Source of the DNA: Diplonema japonicum
Lineage: Eukaryota > Protista > Euglenozoa: Diplonemea
Length of the DNA stretch: 64,000 bases
NCBI GenBank assembly: GCA_964019335.1
Contig: OZ025745.1
Span: 248,001 to 312,000 of the forward strand
Direction of reading: 5' to 3'
Part shown: in pieces, positions 21,290 to 30,158 of the stretch
Position numbering within the stretch: the first letter of the stretch is position 1
Layout of the letters: each line of letters opens with the position of its first letter
Translations under genes and position numbers: made by a program
The notes under the pieces: model-generated
The model's database searches: none
Told to the model about the DNA's origin: nothing
Seen by the model: the letters and a program-made list of their open reading frames with translations, nothing else

Positions 21290-22896
21290 TCACGTTTGCA
21301 CACACTCCTCCTTTGGGGAAAATTTTTTTTTATATTTTTTTTTTCCCTCTCCCCAATACCTTTCCATGTGTCCCAACAGATGCCTCAATCGGGTCTATTT
21401 CAAGAATGGGGTGGCGAATTTCCTCAAAACGGCCGCCGTATGTAGGATTCACCTTTTTTTTTTTTTTTTTTTTTTTTTTTCCTTCCCCTTCCCCTGTTCA
21501 TACCTGTACAACTGTATGCAAGGGCATTGAAAGATTCGTGCAAACCTCAGGCCGTGACTCAACAATGTATGCATAGATGACACGCAACACAGCTTGATGG
21601 GAAATGATCAAAAGCGGCTTTTTAGACCTCTCCAGCTCCATGATCACCGGCTCCAGCCTCGCAACTAGGTCATGATAGGACTCCCCATGGGGGTATCGGT
21701 ACCAGTACTTGTCCTGTGCCCTCTTGTTGAACTCGTCGTTGGCGTTCTCCCTGATTTCTTCGTAAGTCCACCCATCATATATCCCAGCATCTATTTCCTC
21801 TAGTGCCCGCCAGTGGACGATGGGAAACTCACCTGGAAAAAAAAAGTTTTTTTTTTCTTTCCCCAAAACAAATACCTGAAACCGGGATAGCTGTCATCTT
21901 TGTTCTTTGCAGCGTGCTGCACCAGACCTCTAACCCTTCAGGTGCGTACTTTGACATGAAATTTTTAAGTTCTTGCGCGTATTGTTCACCTATTTTTTTT
22001 TTTTTTTTTTCTTTCCCCATATCAATACCAAACGGGGTCAGACCGGAGTCCCCGCCGATTTTCCCTTTCAAATTGAACTGGGACTGCCCGTGTCGCGACA
22101 GGAATATAGGTCTCATAGACAAGTTCACATTCATCAAGAAATTAGCCACTCTGCATGGGACGTATCCTCTGATTTTGTTGATTTCAAGGTCAGCTCCTCC
22201 ATCGCCCATTCTGATGTAAGGATAGTCCTCCTCAAGGGGCTCGTAAGCGTTTTTGTAATGTTGGAGCCGAGCGTCGAAAAGCGCCGAGGCTTCCGCGTGT
22301 TCCAGGGAGGAGAAAGAAGAAGAAGAGGTGAGCGTCATTTCTTTGTATTCTTTGAGTTTTAAGTCGTTTGTTTCACCCACCTCAAGGAACATGATCCTGT
22401 CGGGGTCGAGGACCTTCGACAATTCTTCAAATATCATTTTCCTTCGTTTCTCTTCTACGTTCTGCCCGTCGAGGATTCCAACTTTCCCGCCTTGTCTGAG
22501 CCAGGTCACCATGTCGGCCATAGCTTGCTTGACGACGTTTTCCCTCCGGCTGGAGGCATCTTCGTTTGAATGGTTGAAAAATTCTGTTTCTTGCCCGCCT
22601 TCTATCTCCCGTCGGTATCCATGGACTTGGAAGACGCACGCCTTTAACCCTAGCCAGCTTAAGAAGCGGACGATTCTCCGTGACACATAGCTTTTCCCCC
22701 TCCCGGGTAGGCCCACAGTCACGATAACGAGGGGGCGCCCCACGAACTCGTTTGTGGCCTCGTAGCCTGAGGTCACGACAGGGCCTATCTTCCCGTCCTG
22801 TGGGTTGTTCCCCTTGTTGTCATACTCCACCGATGATATCCTCTCTCCATAGGTAGTGGCATCGATGACTACACGTGTGCTTTCGTCTTTTGTCAT
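21290..22896 (-). CDS. PFKFB: 6-phosphofructo-2-kinase/fructose-2,6-bisphosphatase, 5 exons
   Basis: P-loop VGLPGRGKS; phosphatase motifs LSRHGQS, EIDAG, YRYPHGESY and ISHQAV. Introns 21990-22028, 21833-21875 and 21453-21503; a last intron and short exon ending TGA 21290 are tentative. Confidence 0.92.
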
Positions 22897-23075
22897 TTTT
22901 TTTTTTTTTTTTTAAAAATCCCACCGACCTTTTTTTTTTTTAATAACAATTTTTGTCAATTTGACAATATTTAAAACGGGGGGAATTTTTAAAAAGGGGG
23001 GAAAAAAAATGGACGTTGTCGGTAGAAAAAAGAAAAAAAGGGGGGGGTGGAGGGGGACCAGTTAAATATAATATG

Positions 23076-23108
<33 letters not shown>

Positions 23109-23298
23109 GCAAAACCCATGAGTCGCGAACAGGTTAGTGTTAATACAGAAAAGAGATTGCTTAAAGGCAAGAGGTCAAAAAAAAGGGGGGTAAGCTATGG
23201 GAAACCCAAAAAAAAAAGGCGATGTTTAAGGGCAAATCCCCAATATCAACTAAAAAAAAAAAAAAAAAAAAAAAGAGAAAAGAACACACTCCATCATC

Positions 23299-23338
<40 letters not shown>

Positions 23339-23444
23339 CGGAGCGGAAGGAACGCAAGTACAAGAAATTTCGTTTTTTTTTTTTGCTTTTTTTTTTTTTT
23401 TTTGAGAAATAAAAAAAAAAAAAAAAAAAAAAAAAAATGTCAAC

Positions 23445-26400
23445 TCAGTCAACTTCCTCCACAACCGGGTTGTTACTACAACCAGACCCAATCCTCCACG
23501 GGAAGAAATCTCTGAATTCTGTCGTTTCCGGACAAGGCAAATATGGCGACGCTTCGTGCACCAGAAGGGTTAGAAGCCTGTTCAAAACAGTTAAAGAGGG
23601 AAGGACGCTCGACGAAAACACAGTGTTACGAAGCATCGCGACATTGGACAGAAGATTGGACTCGGCGGCAGTCCTGGGTGGGTTGGGAACCAGGGGCTCT
23701 ATGTAAGTAACGATGGAACGAAGCTCAGCAGCTTTCTTCACGGGCCACACCCCGACGGGGGGATCCTCCCGCTCGGCAGCTTTGCACATCTCATCGATTT
23801 CCGACTGAGAAAGATCACTCTCACTAACATTAATTTTCTTGCTTCGGACCCCATCACCAGAACATGAAATTGTCATAGAATCATCAAAGTTGGTCTCGAC
23901 CTCAACATGAATCACCACAATATGTTTTTTCGCCACATCGACACGGATATTAGCAAGAAGTGAGTTATTCTTCGTGTAAAAACTCTCACCGGCGAAGAAG
24001 CTGAGTGTTACATGGTCGCAGAATTCTTCCGTTGTACACACATCGATGCTTTTCTTGGTTGGGACTGTTGTGTTTCGCTTCACAACCGGAAATGAGTAGA
24101 GGTTCATGTTGCTCTCGCACGATACCCCCGCCACCTCGCGTACCTTTGGTATTGTTGTTACCAATGTGTGGCTGTCATCAATGTCTCCCTTAACAGCACG
24201 CTCATTAGGTGATAAAACCCCTGATACTGTGTTTCCCTCATATACATCCTCCACAGAGAATTCTTCCCCACCTTTTTGCCCTGATACGTATCCCGGAGGC
24301 GGACGGAATGCCTTTAACCAAACATGCATAGTTGGTAGCTTTCCCGTCTTATCGTACAAATGGGATTTTCTGGCGTATGGTTCTACCGTGTCCACCCACG
24401 ACCCGAATCCTGTGCACGTAACCGGCGGGCGTATCACTTGTTCCAGCTTTTTTATTTCCTTGTCGATGCCTTGTACCTCCGGGTACATTTTTTTCAGATC
24501 GTTCAAGATGACAATTGCCATGGCATACGACACCTGTTGTGTCTCGGCTTGCGCATTATGCTCACGAGCGTATGTGACAGCAAGTAGAATTACGCTTGAC
24601 GAGAGGGATTGATAGCCATCTATGGTAGAGGTAGTCGATGATGGGTTAGCTACTGTGATGCCGGAGAGGAGGTTGGCGTTGCTGGCACGATACAGATACT
24701 CCGCAGAATCGGTTTGTTCCAATCCCACTGTGACACTGCCTTGTTCGACCTTGGACATGTCGATGGAGGTGTACCCTCCGCAAACCTCTGTCAAGTCGTT
24801 GATGTGGTGCAATGTGTAGTAAGCAGGTACATTTGACAGAACCACTGTTCTTGATCTACAACATGCAGCGGGTGGCTGGGACGAACCGACGCTGATCGTC
24901 AGCGGCGTTACGTCCAGCAACAGGACGTCCGCTGATGCTTTCTTAGACCTTTTGCCTATTTTGCAAGAATATCCAGCTTGTTTAATCGTTGGTTCTTCTC
25001 TCGCACTGTGTGTTTTAAGAGTTTAAATGTGGAGGGGAGGGGGGGGGGGGGGGGGGGACATACATTTTCTTCTTTCGTTTTGCCTTTAGTTGGTTTAAAC
25101 AGGTATTCTTTTCGTAGCGATGCGATTCTTTTTGGAATGAACAGCTCTCTTGTTTTTCCTCAACCACTAGTTCGTCCAAGTAGTCGCAGAAACCTTCGTT
25201 TTCGTCGGCGCGAGCTTTGGCGGACCCGCGCGAAGAAGCGCGTGCTGTCTTGCTATTAAGGTTTTCATCGATCCCAAGAAGACATTTTTCTTCCTCCTCG
25301 TCACCCCACCCCCCCGAGAACATGTCGGCATCTTCGTCTGAGCCTTCACTTTCATCGTCGTCTTCATCATTGCTATCGCTATCGCTGGAACTATCGGTTT
25401 CATTTTCGCAAACCACTTGGGCCTTGCCGCTGATGAACCCGAGAGTTTCTTCTACCTTCGGTCGCTTCTTCAGAGAAGAGAGACGCTGCATCATGGGAAT
25501 TGTCCTGTTTCCTCCCCTCCCACCCTTGCCTCCCCGGCGTGTTCCAGTGACCATACACTTCTCCTTCTCACCTCGAGGAGCAGAGACCCTCTCTCTCTCA
25601 TCACAATCTTCATCCCTTGAAGGAACTAGCGATGAAGAGACTCGCCGCCTCTCAAGACGAGATTCATTCGTTTGTTTCACTCGTTGCCTAATCTTCTCTG
25701 AAACAGGTGATGAAGCAGGCGCAGGGCATGGTGCCGGAGGCGGCCCTCCAAAAGAAGCGTATATTTCATTCGATGGTGCACAAGGTGGCGCACCACCTGG
25801 AGCTGGAGCTGGGGCTGCAGGAGACGGCCGGCATGGTGCCGGAAGCGGCTCACCACCACCACCACCACTTCTTCGCGACGAACGTGGTGGACCAACTGAA
25901 GGTGGAGGAGGCGGCGGAGGACCTGCGGTAATTCGTGAGAGTGGTGTTGAGCAGAACTTTGAGAGAGTCGAACAGTCGAAATTGTCCAAACCAGCCAGCT
26001 TTTTTTTCTTGTTGGGGATGAGCTTGGCCCCAAAAAAGATTTTATCAATGCTGCCAGCTACCGCAGACACAGTTACAGCCGCGCTTTCGCTTTTATCGTG
26101 TACCTGTACTTCATGTTCACCCGAGTCCAGCTTTTTTTTCCTCTTGGTTTTACGTTTCTTTTTCGAAGCCGCGGTCTGTTCATTCGTCTCGGTGTTGTTG
26201 AAGCCGGTTTGCAGCCTTCTGAGCAACTGCCGTTCTTCCTCCTGTTCATTCAGGATTTCTTGGGTGCTCTTGAAGACCTGCTCTGGGAGGACATCAACAT
26301 GCTCCTTGCCGGCAACTTCTGCGAGGCCCGGTGTCGTGTTTGCCACTGATCCTGTTTTTTCAGCCTCGCTCCTCTCCTCCACTGCGAGCATCGAGGTGAA

Positions 26401-29400
26401 TTTCGTGACAAGGTTGTACTTGATACCGATGTCGACGATATGCGGTTTCATGGCTTGCTTCCTTTGCTCATTGACAACGGGGTTTGGGTGGTACATCCCG
26501 TCCTCCCAGTCTCTGATCACATTCCTTGCACACAGTTTGTGTATGATGCTGCCCGACACGTAGTGCGACGGCCACGGTGTTACCAGGAAACGCTCTTCGG
26601 GTATTTCGTCAGCGTACCCTACAGGCTCGACACCTGGCCCTGTTCTGATAGCCTTCATCTCTGCACGGCGTGGGGTCTTGTCGCAGAACGAGTACACGAC
26701 GGACCGCTCCCCACAGTATAAACCTGCTATGTGCTGGGGTGCTTGCACCACGGTCTTGTCAAAGGCTTCCTTAAGAGCGGGAGACACCTCACCAGACCAG
26801 TCCACTGTGGCCTGAGACATTACGCCTTGGCCTGCTCGCCAAATTTGTTTCTTCAGCTTCGAAACCCATTTCGATTTCGCATCGGGACCCAGTACCTCGG
26901 CCATACCGTTCCCCGCATGGGCCAAGGCCCGCAAAGTGTGTGTGCACATGGAACTGCCAACACCCACTGTGAACAGCCGAGTGTGGTGCTGAGATCTCAT
27001 GATTGCAATGCTGCTTTGTAACTGGCTGCCGAGCTGGCCGTCTGTGAACATGATAATGTTGACATTCTCCTTGCGAAGGGCCGTCACAGAACTCACGAGA
27101 TTTTCGACGTTAGTGCCGCCACGGCAGGGGGCAAGAATCGACACAGCCTGCAGGGCACGCTCAAGGTTAGAAGGTGTCATTGGGAGGCTACGAGGAAACA
27201 CCGGGGCGTGGTTGTTGCCGAAGGGCAACACGTTGAAGAGAGTCTTCTGAGGGATTTCACGGAGCGTCTCGTGCACTGCAGTGATGGCGTCGTTCATGGC
27301 GCCGCCCTGCTGCATGCTGAACGAGCAATCCACCGCAAGAAGCAACTCCATGCCGCTCTTAACCACATGATTTTCAAACTCAGGGAAAAAACAGATCATC
27401 CCCGCTTGCGTCCCCGAACCGTCGTTCTCTACCCACATCCTGGGCACAGTGAGGTCGGAGATGAACACTTCCAACACAAAGTCCTCCCTGCCCGCATCAA
27501 CACCAGGTGCCAACTTGACAGTCGCATGTTGTTGAGACCGCTTTTGAAGGACCTCGTGGCTGGTGACGAGCTTTGTAATATCCCATGGCATCGCAACACC
27601 GATCTCAATGTCGGTCCCTGTAGGGTTAAAGGCAACGTGGCTGTCACCACCGACAACAGGCCCTTCTGAAAGAGCTGCCATACGCGAGGCAGGGTGAACT
27701 TTAGAAGGTAACACCCACCTGATGCACCCTTGCGCGGCGTCGACTTCAAGCTCAGTTACGTAAGTGATCTTGATGACAACGTCAGACTTCGGGGGCAGGT
27801 TGCCCACAGAGACTGTGAAGACGTCAGGTGTTTCTGACTCGTCAAGGAGATATGCGCCCTTCCCGGCTGCGACGGCTTTGGTGTATTCCCGTTTGGCTTG
27901 TTCCTTTTCTTTGGTGATGCCGACGAGATGCTTGTCGTTGATGAAGGCTTCGAACCCGCACACCGCAGCACCGCCCTGCAATGGAAACACGTACTTCGCC
28001 TCAATGGTGTACGAGGAGGCGTTCCGGTAGTGTTGCATCACAACAACCTCACCAATTGTGTCGAGAAGCTTGCCCTTCACGTGCGTCGCCTTGAGCGGGA
28101 CCGCAACACCGTCGCTCACCAACCCGATCTTCACGTCTTTAATCGCCGGGGCTAACGGGGTTAAATCCTGCGGAACAACGTTGAACGGCTCTGTGTTTTC
28201 AGACACAAATTTACCTCGGGGTGGGAGGGGCGGCGGGATCTTACGGTCGCACTTAATCCGGACAAGATACGAAAGAGCCTGCTGAGTGGTTCTGTACACA
28301 CAGTACTCATCGTCAACGAAGCTGGAAGGGCTGCCAGGGTGGTGCTTCCTACCGTGCACACAGTCGAACCCTTCAGGCGCCTCAGTGGCATCGCACATAA
28401 TCTGCGTTGTGTCGGCGACCCTTCCGGTGGCAACATCACACACCAAGACGTAGCAGTACCCGTTGTAGCTGTCGGCGTACTTCAAAGCCGTGTCGATGCT
28501 GTCCGTGAAGTACAAGCCCTTTCCGAGCATTCCCTTGTCGCGTCTTTTTCTTTGGTATTTGGGAAGCCGGAGGCCGCGGGATAGAATTCCCGGTATGTTA
28601 CCGGCAGGCGAGGCGTGGAGGAGGAGCGAAGACGGTGTGATGGGCTCCTTGTTGTTGACCTCGGCGTCCTTTCGAAGAGAGAAGATCGACTCGATTTCAA
28701 TGTCCCTCGCCGTCCCTCTGCGGATCATTGCTGCAATGTCTTTGAAACGACCCTCCTTGACTTCGTCCATCTGGCAAGACAAGGACGCGTACTGCCAGGA
28801 AGTTCCCGCGTCATATATGTTCCCCCCGACAAACTCCCCTACAGACAGCATGTCTCGAAGGATGTCGAGAAGGTCCTGCTGTTCGGAGATGTCGGCAGTG
28901 CATGTGATGGAAACCTTGCCCTTCAGTTTGCTTACATATTTAGAGAGCTCTGGGATGGCGGTGAGGTCTTGGTTGTCGAACTCGGTTTTTTGAGCGATCG
29001 TTGCCAACAAACACTCCGCATCTTCGACATCTTGAAGAGACATCCCGTGCGCAATGTCGTGCGGGTTAAGACCAGCTTGTTGTACTTTGGTCCATCCCGC
29101 TTTGAACATGTGATCGACAACGGTTTCAAGTGATTGGTTTTGGATATTCGGGACGGTGGTGTTCAAGGGAGCGGAAGAAAGCCCGACCTTGGACCCGATG
29201 TTTTTGCATGACGACGACGATCGTGAGTAGTTCTCTTGCTCGGCGAGTTGGTGCAGGTACTCGAAGAGCTTTTCAGCGTTCTCCACATTATCCGTCACCG
29301 CCACCTTCGACACAGTTTCGTTGCAAAACAACACTTTATACGCAACAGCCTGCGATGCGTTTGTCACACACACAGCGTGCAGTTCTATCACAATTTCTTC

Positions 29401-29913
29401 TTTGTTTCTCGCGTACACAGTACGGTACACGACAGTATATAATGTAGAGGGTTCGACCCAAGCTGTCCAGGAAGGATGGGTTGGGTCCGGCCATGCGTCT
29501 TGTCCGGGTTTATCGCCGATGGCTTCCCACCATCTTTCTGGTTCTTCGTGTTCAATTGGTACGAGTCCTTGCGTGGCGCCGTGTGGTGTTGCAATTGTGT
29601 AGTCTGATAGATCTGGTTGGGCTGCGGGGTTGTCGGCCCATGTTTTCAGGTATTCCTCTGTTACAACGGGAACGCCTAGTGCGACGGCTTTCTTCAGCGC
29701 GTAGCTCCCTTCCCACTCGTCTTTCCCGCAGCGCCGTGTCACGACCGCGTGGGTCTTCGCGTTTACAAAACTGCTCCCCTTCGCCCCGACCGATTTTAGC
29801 ATTGTGAGTATCTCCTTTTTCTTGCTGTACCCCACGGGATCGCTCACCAAGGGCGTCCCGAGCTCCCAGACAATGTGGGTGTCAACAGGAAGTGCCTCCA
29901 TTGGACGGGGCAT
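23445..29913 (-). CDS. PARP4: PARP4 (vault PARP)-like protein fused to Hsp70 linker, RRM, Hsp70 substrate-binding domain and EEVD; 2 exons, about 2136 aa
   Basis: BRCT-like N-terminus; PARP H-Y-E motifs (LLLHAS, GKGLYF, DDEYCVY); VIT (IEAKYVFPL, SVGNLPP); vWA MIDAS (VDCSFSM, FTDG). Phase-2 intron 25006-25063 (AT|GTATGT...CACAG|T) joins it in frame to DVLLLDVTPL, VVKRNTTVPTKKS, LSQSEIDEM and PVVEEVD*. Confidence 0.85.
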
Positions 29914-30158
29914 TTTTTTTTTCTTCTTTCTCCTTTCTTTTTTTTTCTTTTTTCTCTTGGTCTTTCTTCTTGTGTATCCCCTTTATAAAGATGTGCAGTG
30001 GGGGGCAAAAAAAAACGTAGAAAGAAAAATAATAATAATAAAAAGGGGTGCGTGTACCGAGGCATTTTTTTTTTTTTTTTTTCCCCAAAAAATAAAAAAC
30101 TGTTTGTAACTAACAGAAATTGAAGGGAGGGGTGGGGGGGGGGGGGGGGGGGGGGTAC

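Follow-up and report, generated by a model that had tools for sequence, protein, structure and literature searches.

A PARP4-like gene of Diplonema japonicum with a predicted Hsp70-derived C-terminal tail

The window analysed here is a 64,000-nucleotide stretch of the genome of the diplonemid Diplonema japonicum (assembly GCA_964019335.1, contig OZ025745.1, positions 248,001 to 312,000). Its minus strand contains a two-exon locus with a coding sequence (CDS) of 6411 nt, predicted to encode a protein of 2136 residues plus a stop codon, in which a PARP4-like ADP-ribosyltransferase is continued by a tail derived from the C-terminal half of Hsp70. Exon 1 (25064-29913, minus strand, 4850 nt) starts with the ATG at 29913 and encodes the PARP4-like core and a long low-complexity spacer; its N-terminus aligns with that of the ortholog P0002. 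Exon 2 (23445-25005, minus strand, 1561 nt including the TGA stop at 23447-23445) encodes the Hsp70-derived C-terminal module. The exons are separated by a 58-nt phase-2 intron (25006-25063, minus strand), which is composed of a GTATGT donor, a C-tract (about 22 C and a few T), and a terminal CACAG.

The two exons belong to different reading frames. Open reading frame (ORF) A extends from 29913 to 25015 on the minus strand and encodes 1632 residues, with codons starting at 25017+3k and the stop codon at 25017-25015. Frame B, with codons starting at 24920+3k, is open from 25022 to the stop at 23447-23445, and its last upstream stop lies at 25025-25023. The junction codon ATT is assembled from the AT at the end of exon 1 (25065-25064) and the T at the start of exon 2 (25005). 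The frames and the junction phase were verified by hand on the sequence, and the two exons were searched against databases separately. The TTG listed as a start at 24920 is an artefact of an ORF listing made with the bacterial code. The first ATG in the exon 2 frame is at exon-2 residue 83, 3' of the conserved linker DVLLLDVTPL, so the linker is translatable only as a continuation of exon 1. We consider the locus very probably to be a single gene of two exons.

The N-terminal part of the protein begins with a BRCT-like domain (29644-29820, minus strand, residues 32-90), the match of which to PF00533 is borderline at 20.9 bits against a cut-off of 21.3. It is followed by the PARP catalytic domain (28306-28707, minus strand, residues 403-536; PF00644, E=6.7e-16), a VIT domain (27760-28095, minus strand, residues 607-718; PF08487, E=3.2e-35), and a vWA domain (26896-27348, minus strand, residues 856-1006; PF13768, E=5.3e-18, also matched by PF00092). 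In a phmmer search of the PDB, the best match of the PARP domain is human PARP4 (8swy, E=1.7e-26), compared with 1.4e-10 for PARP1. The H-Y-E triad is intact, as LLHAS, GLYF, and DDEY align with LLHGS, GIYF, and DDEF of human PARP4, and is consistent with a predicted ADP-ribosyltransferase activity. The similarity of exon 1 to human PARP4 reaches approximately human residue 1260. The domain matches show the N-terminal 1230 residues to be a predicted PARP4-like (vault-type) ADP-ribosyltransferase with VIT and vWA domains. The remainder of exon 1 (25064-26226, minus strand, residues ~1230-1617) is a non-conserved, low-complexity spacer rich in K, P, S, D, and E, which has no PDB or Pfam match; its approximately 400 residues are presumably disordered.

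The C-terminal module starts with the Hsp70 interdomain linker and strand β1 of the substrate-binding domain (SBD) (24885-24929, minus strand; DVLLLDVTPLTISVG), which align with residues 384-408 of HSPA2. The linker DVLLLDVTPL occupies exon-2 residues 26-35. Strands 2-8 of the β-subdomain of the SBD (SBD-β) and the start of helix A (23769-24104, minus strand, exon-2 residues 301-412) match positions 405-516 of the 599 positions of the PF00012 profile with 32.3 bits, above the cut-off of 20.6. Searched against the PDB, exon 2 retrieves the SBDs of Kar2, HSPA2, Hsc70, and DnaK with E-values from 2e-6 to 1e-2, the linker being aligned separately; the SBD is 30% identical to that of the genome's own BiP. 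The region where the lid would be expected is degenerate (23460-23768, minus strand, exon-2 residues 413-515). It has no profile match and is modelled as low-confidence helices, and it aligns with the tails of P0002 and P0123. The protein terminates with EEVD (23448-23459, minus strand) in the context ...NNPVVEEVD*, where the homolog from Flectonema ends ...PVIEEVD and P0002 ends ...ISEVD.

A nucleotide-binding (ATPase) domain (NBD) was not found in either exon, the Pfam HSP70 match being limited to profile positions 405-516. The protein is therefore not an Hsp70 chaperone, but a derivative of only the C-terminal half of one. It shares with cytosolic Hsp70/Hsc70 (HSPA8, Ssa1) the linker DVLLLDVTPL, the stretch RNTTxPTKK, GE..TK.NN, the helix A start LS..EI..M, and the terminal EEVD. 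It differs from them in lacking the NBD and the PPAPRG loop, in having an insert of approximately 260 residues in loop L1,2, and in its unrecognisable lid. Together, the matches and motifs show the last 520 residues of the predicted protein to be derived from a cytosolic Hsp70, of which only the C-terminal half is represented and the ATPase domain is missing.

The insert of ~260-265 residues (24105-24884, minus strand) separates strand 1 (LTISVG) from strand 2 (SFPVVKRN) of the SBD, which by comparison with Hsp70 is the position of the substrate-cleft loop L1,2. P0002, P0123, and P0143 have homologous inserts, and for that of D. japonicum neither a Pfam family at E<=10 nor an Atlas neighbour was found. 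AlphaFold2 prediction of exon 2 from a three-sequence alignment gave a mean predicted local distance difference test score (pLDDT) of 34.5, with ~25-45 for the mostly helical insert, which makes the model unusable. It is too poor to show whether the β-sandwich, with strand 1 parted from strands 2-8 by about 260 residues, closes. We rejected an assignment of the insert as an RNA-recognition motif (RRM) on the same grounds: the lack of a Pfam match at E<=10, the lack of an Atlas neighbour, and the low-confidence, mostly helical AlphaFold2 model. The split of the SBD by the insert and the terminal EEVD are diplonemid-specific features.

An earlier note on this DNA, made from the sequence letters, had called the insert RRM-like, and this part of its reading is not upheld. 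Its splicing of the two ORFs in phase by a 58-nt GTATGT...CACAG intron into a 6411-nt CDS agrees with the frames, phase, and lengths determined here, and all the motifs that it quoted (DVLLLDVTPLTISV, VVKRNTTVPTKKS, GESFYTKNNSLL, LSQSEIDEM, and the terminal PVVEEVD*) were found in the exon 2 translation. Its description of an Hsp70 half with linker, SBD-β, and EEVD but no NBD is borne out by the 32-bit Pfam match, the PDB matches to SBDs, and the motifs, and its BRCT-PARP-VIT-vWA architecture of PARP4 type by Pfam and the PDB in agreement, with BRCT borderline.

More than 10,000 introns of D. japonicum are supported by RNA; 98% of them are GT-AG, their median length is 41 nt, and their consensus is (G)/GTATG at the 5' end and CAG at the 3' end (PMC12621601). 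The 58-nt intron fits this published consensus and size range in its sequence features (PMC12621601). An in-phase GT-AG pair was rejected as sole proof of the intron, since such pairs arise by chance: there are 37 of them within 25300-24800. Only one donor in the same interval has the species consensus GTATG(T), and GTATGT occurs six times on the minus strand of the whole 64 kb. Homopolymer-type introns are proven in a paralog of the gene by comparison of P0001, a protein derived from D. japonicum transcripts, with the genome: one is 41 nt long with the form GTAAGG-A24-...AG, and another, of about 700 nt, opens with GTGTGT-C11.

Removal of the 58 nt is seen only in a contig of a relative with approximately 94% identity (run X1, whose RNA nature is a guess). 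The comparison with contigs from sequencing runs was made with the repeats at 23200-23447 and 25790-25824 excluded. One 1725-nt contig of X1 covers 23448-25007 and 25074-25233 and has 8 nt in place of 66, which makes it shorter by exactly 58 nt. Its minus-strand reading across the junction is AAA CGA AGA AAC AAA AGT GCG AGA, which leads out of frame A into frame B with no intervening stop (KRRNKSARE). The depth of X1 is 14 over the 3' 1.7 kb and declines towards the 5' end through 6.5 and 2.7 to 0 in the conserved PARP-VIT-vWA core. Such a 3' bias resembles that of a long, rare mRNA primed at its poly(A) tail and is unlike DNA. The presence of the intron in the DNA-like contigs of three other runs argues against an assembly error. 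A frameshift or assembly error in the C-tract was rejected, as the shift would have to fall within the five nucleotides 25022-25018, outside the homopolymer, and the three DNA-like runs reproduce the sequence.

Homologs of the gene or of its tail were found in diplonemids. P0002 is a protein of 2200 residues encoded on a 118-kb ENA contig, and its core is 47% identical to that of the window gene. As one predicted protein, it has the PARP-VIT-vWA core, a low-complexity spacer, the linker LLLLDVTPLSLGI, an insert of about 270 residues, SBD-β (PVIPRNTTIPCRK...), and the terminal ISEVD. The transcripts P0123 and P0143 of Flectonema neradi contain the linker ILLLDVTPLSVGI, a homologous insert, SBD-β (68 bits), and the terminal PVIEEVD. 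The linker is thus kept as LLLLDVTPLSLGI in P0002 and as ILLLDVTPLSVGI in Flectonema P0143, and it is also present in PARP4 proteins of bivalves. The identity of the module across the three diplonemid taxa is ~22-24%, and within the tail, conservation is centred on the linker, RNTTxPTKK, some SBD motifs, and the terminal (E/S)EVD. A search with exon 2 of 1.84 billion representatives returned 18 weak matches, among which P0002 and Flectonema P0123 are the only real relatives. Against long proteins, the tail of P0002 matched only itself, and against proteins of 285-908 residues, exon 2 matched only ordinary Hsp70s.

The genome of D. japonicum, which was searched as 62.5 Mb in 132 contigs, contains a second PARP4-like gene (G000:C80:107311-113698; L010 4312-10699) with 49% core identity. 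Its product has the order BRCT-PARP-VIT-vWA-ubiquitin, followed by 540 residues without a Pfam match. This paralog is 99.9% identical to P0001 from the EukProt transcriptome of Diplonema japonicum, and its BRCT domain scores 30.1 bits with PF00533, above the cut-off, as does that of P0001 with approximately 30 bits. In a quick maximum-likelihood tree of the core, the window gene and P0002 are adjacent to a 100%-supported clade of the ubiquitin-tailed paralog and P0003 but do not belong to it. The topology indicates that the ubiquitin-tailed and Hsp70-tailed forms are old paralogs within diplonemids.

The contig of run X1 also enabled us to evaluate coding constraint on exon 2. All of its indels relative to exon 2 are multiples of three, including a 6-nt one (24932-24936) that precedes the supposed TTG start, and 25 of the 40 listed substitutions are at third codon positions (binomial p=1.5e-4). 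This pattern shows the predicted Hsp70 C-terminal half without NBD to evolve under purifying selection. It seems likely that the ratio of nonsynonymous to synonymous substitution rates lies well below 1 over the whole tail in more diplonemids.

The attachment of fragments of other proteins to a PARP4-like core is not limited to diplonemids. We counted additional C-terminal families in precomputed Pfam annotations of the 120 best relatives of the core and found actin in ~30 proteins, ubiquitin in ~21, 14-3-3 in 14, Hsp70 in 13, synaptobrevin in 7, Ribosomal_60s in 5, EF-hand in 3, and Snf7 in 2. Re-scanned examples are mostly sharp-edged fragments, such as positions 4-50 of 410 of actin, 5-60 of 89 of synaptobrevin, and 47-88 of 88 of Ribosomal_60s, the P-stalk tail. 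The Hsp70 piece in the re-scanned relatives covers approximately positions 376-536 of 599, which correspond to the linker and SBD-β, and in the PARP4-like proteins of Ostrea, Magallana/Crassostrea, and Dreissena it begins exactly at LLLLDVTPL. Variable tail arrays are present in bivalves, sponges, amoebae, Euglena, and Bodo (e.g., P0014, P0089, P0010, P0019, P0005, and P0036), and some also contain WH2 domains and pairs of EF-hands.

Bivalve RefSeq models (Ostrea edulis, Magallana gigas, Crassostrea virginica, and Dreissena polymorpha) and the Logan proteins P0070 and P0010 have an Hsp70 linker with SBD-β and no NBD behind the PARP4 core, as in D. japonicum; the piece matches approximately profile positions 381-528 of 599 in public bivalve models and transcript-like Logan proteins. 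P0070 nearly fills three Logan contigs of ~8.4 kb and is thus transcript-like. The SBD of the bivalve and Logan proteins is uninterrupted and nearer to real Hsp70, with 80-102 bits for P0014, P0070, and P0089 and 46 bits for P0010, compared with 32 bits in D. japonicum. In those proteins, the Hsp70 piece is internal, with 200-350 residues after it and no EEVD end, and is arrayed with ubiquitin, actin, or synaptobrevin pieces.

Perina et al. described in 2014 clade 5 PARP4-like proteins of amoebae and some animals that carry additional 14-3-3, actin, or ubiquitin domains; Hsp70 pieces are not mentioned there, and the clade is assigned a unikont origin (PMC4245714). The principle is the same as here, a PARP-VIT-vWA core followed by C-terminal domains from abundant cell proteins, whereas the family considered here is also found in Euglenozoa (Diplonema, Bodo, and Euglena), and the range of arrays observed goes beyond that listed in 2014. 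In the literature beyond that study, we found nothing on Hsp70, synaptobrevin, or decoy tails of PARP4, nor a rationale for the arrays. The statement of the earlier note that no protein with such an architecture had been described was too strong, as the same Hsp70 piece occurs on bivalve RefSeq proteins and transcript-like Logan proteins, and appended domains were described in 2014 (PMC4245714). The Hsp70 tail is the diplonemid version of the recurrent C-terminal fragments of abundant proteins on PARP4-like proteins. What is new is the diplonemid variant, with its split SBD, orphan insert, and terminal EEVD, of a known, unexplained design.

Human PARP4 (vPARP; PDB 8swy and 9bw6) shares with the D. 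japonicum protein the order BRCT-PARP-VIT-vWA (with BRCT borderline in the latter), the closest PARP domain, and the aligned H-Y-E triad. It differs in its C-terminal region of interaction with the major vault protein (MVP), which is not detectable by sequence in the D. japonicum protein; the low-complexity spacer and the Hsp70-derived tail stand in its place. The genome encodes MVP at four loci, arranged in two tandem pairs, and one TROVE-domain protein. The pairs, identified by the MVP shoulder domain, are located at G000:C3:219109-225887 and G000:C45:298122-302629; the two copies of each pair have the same bit score and E-value and are 6.4 kb and 4.2 kb apart, respectively. Hsp70 is one of the reported interactors of vaults in both human and T. 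brucei cells (PMC12547018), and the covalent Hsp70 tail may therefore be a natural clue to a link between vaults and Hsp70.

The best explanation of these observations is probably a single PARP4-like gene with an Hsp70-derived tail that functions as a look-alike docking module. The Hsp70-derived tail would not be a chaperone and could not cycle clients, as the ATPase is missing and the substrate loop L1,2 is disrupted. The best-conserved parts of the tail are short surfaces: the linker, RNTTxPTKK, and EEVD. EEVD is the ligand of TPR clamps in cytosolic Hsp70 and Hsp90, and the hydrophobic Hsp70 linker is bound by the SBDs of Hsp70s and docks on NBDs. The EEVD terminus would recruit TPR co-chaperones, and the tail could also engage genuine Hsp70s, the SBD of which can bind the hydrophobic linker. 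Such docking would bring the ADP-ribosyltransferase to chaperone complexes or to the clients of these, which might happen at or within vaults. We advance the mechanism, in which the tail would place the enzyme in complexes of co-chaperones and Hsp70, perhaps at vaults, only tentatively, as a possibility somewhat short of even.

Several observations weigh against the single gene with a docking tail. The predicted one-protein layout of P0002 comes from gene prediction. In Flectonema P0143 (EukProt EP01060, the longer Trinity isoform i2, 814 residues), residues 1-264 are coiled-coil-like and unlike P0002 or exon 1; this N-terminus may be a fast-evolving spacer, an alternative exon, or a Trinity chimera. 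Run X1 is taken as RNA from an automated guess and the shape of its coverage; if it were DNA, its contig would show an intron-less, uninterrupted frame in the relative instead of splicing. Runs X3, X4, and X5, from the identical organism and two studies, are represented by DNA-like contigs that retain the intron unchanged. No fragment of the Hsp70-tailed gene was found among public predicted proteins, a collection that includes the D. japonicum transcriptome, and the expression of the gene may therefore be low. An MVP-interaction domain is not detectable by sequence, with nothing aligning beyond human PARP4 residue ~1260. The proposed docking draws on general knowledge of Hsp70 motifs.

The C-tract with the AG at 25006 might alternatively be a spliced-leader (SL) acceptor, in which case the downstream ORF would be an independent mRNA for an NBD-less Hsp70-like protein. 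In diplonemids, mRNAs receive an SL by trans-splicing, an SL acceptor likewise looks like a pyrimidine tract with AG behind it, and the 814-residue isoform of Flectonema carries the module behind an N-terminus that is not PARP. However, an independent mRNA would leave the conserved linker untranslated, with no ATG until exon-2 residue 83, and the upstream stop is 9 nt from the acceptor, with no space for a 3' untranslated region (UTR) or a spacer. The contig of the relative (X1) reads through the junction in frame, P0002 holds both halves in one predicted protein, and the in-frame 6-nt indel at 24932-24936 would fall in the 5' UTR, which makes two genes extremely improbable. It is also conceivable that the fusion is real and the tail is a degenerating remnant without specific function, a mere C-terminal extension. 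The weak profile score (32 bits), the lost lid, the disruption of the substrate loop by the insert, the poor AlphaFold2 model, and the mere 18 weak matches among 1.84 billion representatives would fit such decay. Against it stand the purifying selection along exon 2 relative to the 94%-identical relative, with its third-position bias (p=1.5e-4) and exclusively in-frame indels, and the retention of the linker, insert, RNTTxPTKK, and (E/S)EVD terminus in three diplonemid taxa at ~22-24% module identity. We regard a functionless relic as very unlikely.

Another explanation concerns what the tails would be for. The Hsp70 piece and the other appended pieces could copy host proteins that effectors or toxins bind, modify, or use as cofactors, so that an attack on the copy would activate or relocalise the ADP-ribosyltransferase, and with it the vault, as an innate-immune sensor. 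Toxins classically target the imitated proteins or use them as cofactors, and the evolution of PARP4 in primates is rapid. What is appended is not working enzymes but fragments, whose sharp boundaries recur; they form variable arrays in distant lineages, and two old D. japonicum paralogs keep unlike tails, one with ubiquitin and the other with the C-terminal half of Hsp70. However, we found no literature proposing decoy tails on PARP4, the strong divergence of the SBD (30% identity to BiP) and its 260-residue insert are odd for a mimic that needs to be recognised, and simple adaptor functions fit the same list of domains. A bait role of the tail is unlikely in our view. We hold as distinctly unlikely the extension of this idea to PARP4-like proteins across eukaryotes as integrated-decoy effector sensors, in which ubiquitin, the actin N-terminus, 14-3-3, the synaptobrevin SNARE motif, the ribosomal P-stalk tail, calmodulin-like EF-hands, and the Hsp70 linker with SBD (and EEVD) would be the baits, and the PARP domain and perhaps the vault the output. 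If true, the vault PARP, and possibly the vault as well, would have the function that has long been sought, a role in cell-autonomous immunity older than animals.

The single gene with a tail that may dock to chaperone complexes bears on a long-standing open question, the function of PARP4 and the vault particle. It places a PARP4-like VIT-vWA enzyme in diplonemids, in a clade previously thought to have arisen in unikonts, and one of the old diplonemid paralogs ends in an Hsp70 look-alike instead of a recognisable vault-binding domain. Together with the bivalve and bodonid-like PARP4 proteins that carry the Hsp70 linker and SBD piece, the gene defines a recurrent unexplained design, an ADP-ribosyltransferase bearing fragments of the most abundant hub proteins. 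The design raises the question of whether the tails recruit the partners of the imitated proteins (TPR co-chaperones, Hsp70, ubiquitin receptors, and SNAREs) or act as baits.

True intergenic spacers, such as those on either side of the PARP4-like gene, measure at least 245 nt and 548 nt or more, in favour of a single gene across the 58-nt gap. The spacers at 22897-23444 and 29914-30158 consist mostly of long homopolymer runs (T30, A20-30, and C20). The downstream neighbour (21829-22896, minus strand) is a 355-residue ORF for a protein of the 6-phosphofructo-2-kinase/histidine-phosphatase (PFK-2/FBPase-2) type. It probably extends past an intron, because it contains only the start of the phosphatase domain. 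Elsewhere in the genome, three identically scoring copies of a BiP-type Hsp70 are located 27-57 kb apart on one contig (G000:C19:344171-428551; L002-L004). The copy L002 ends ...DSDEL, and its gene is interrupted, with the NBD and SBD in different frames.

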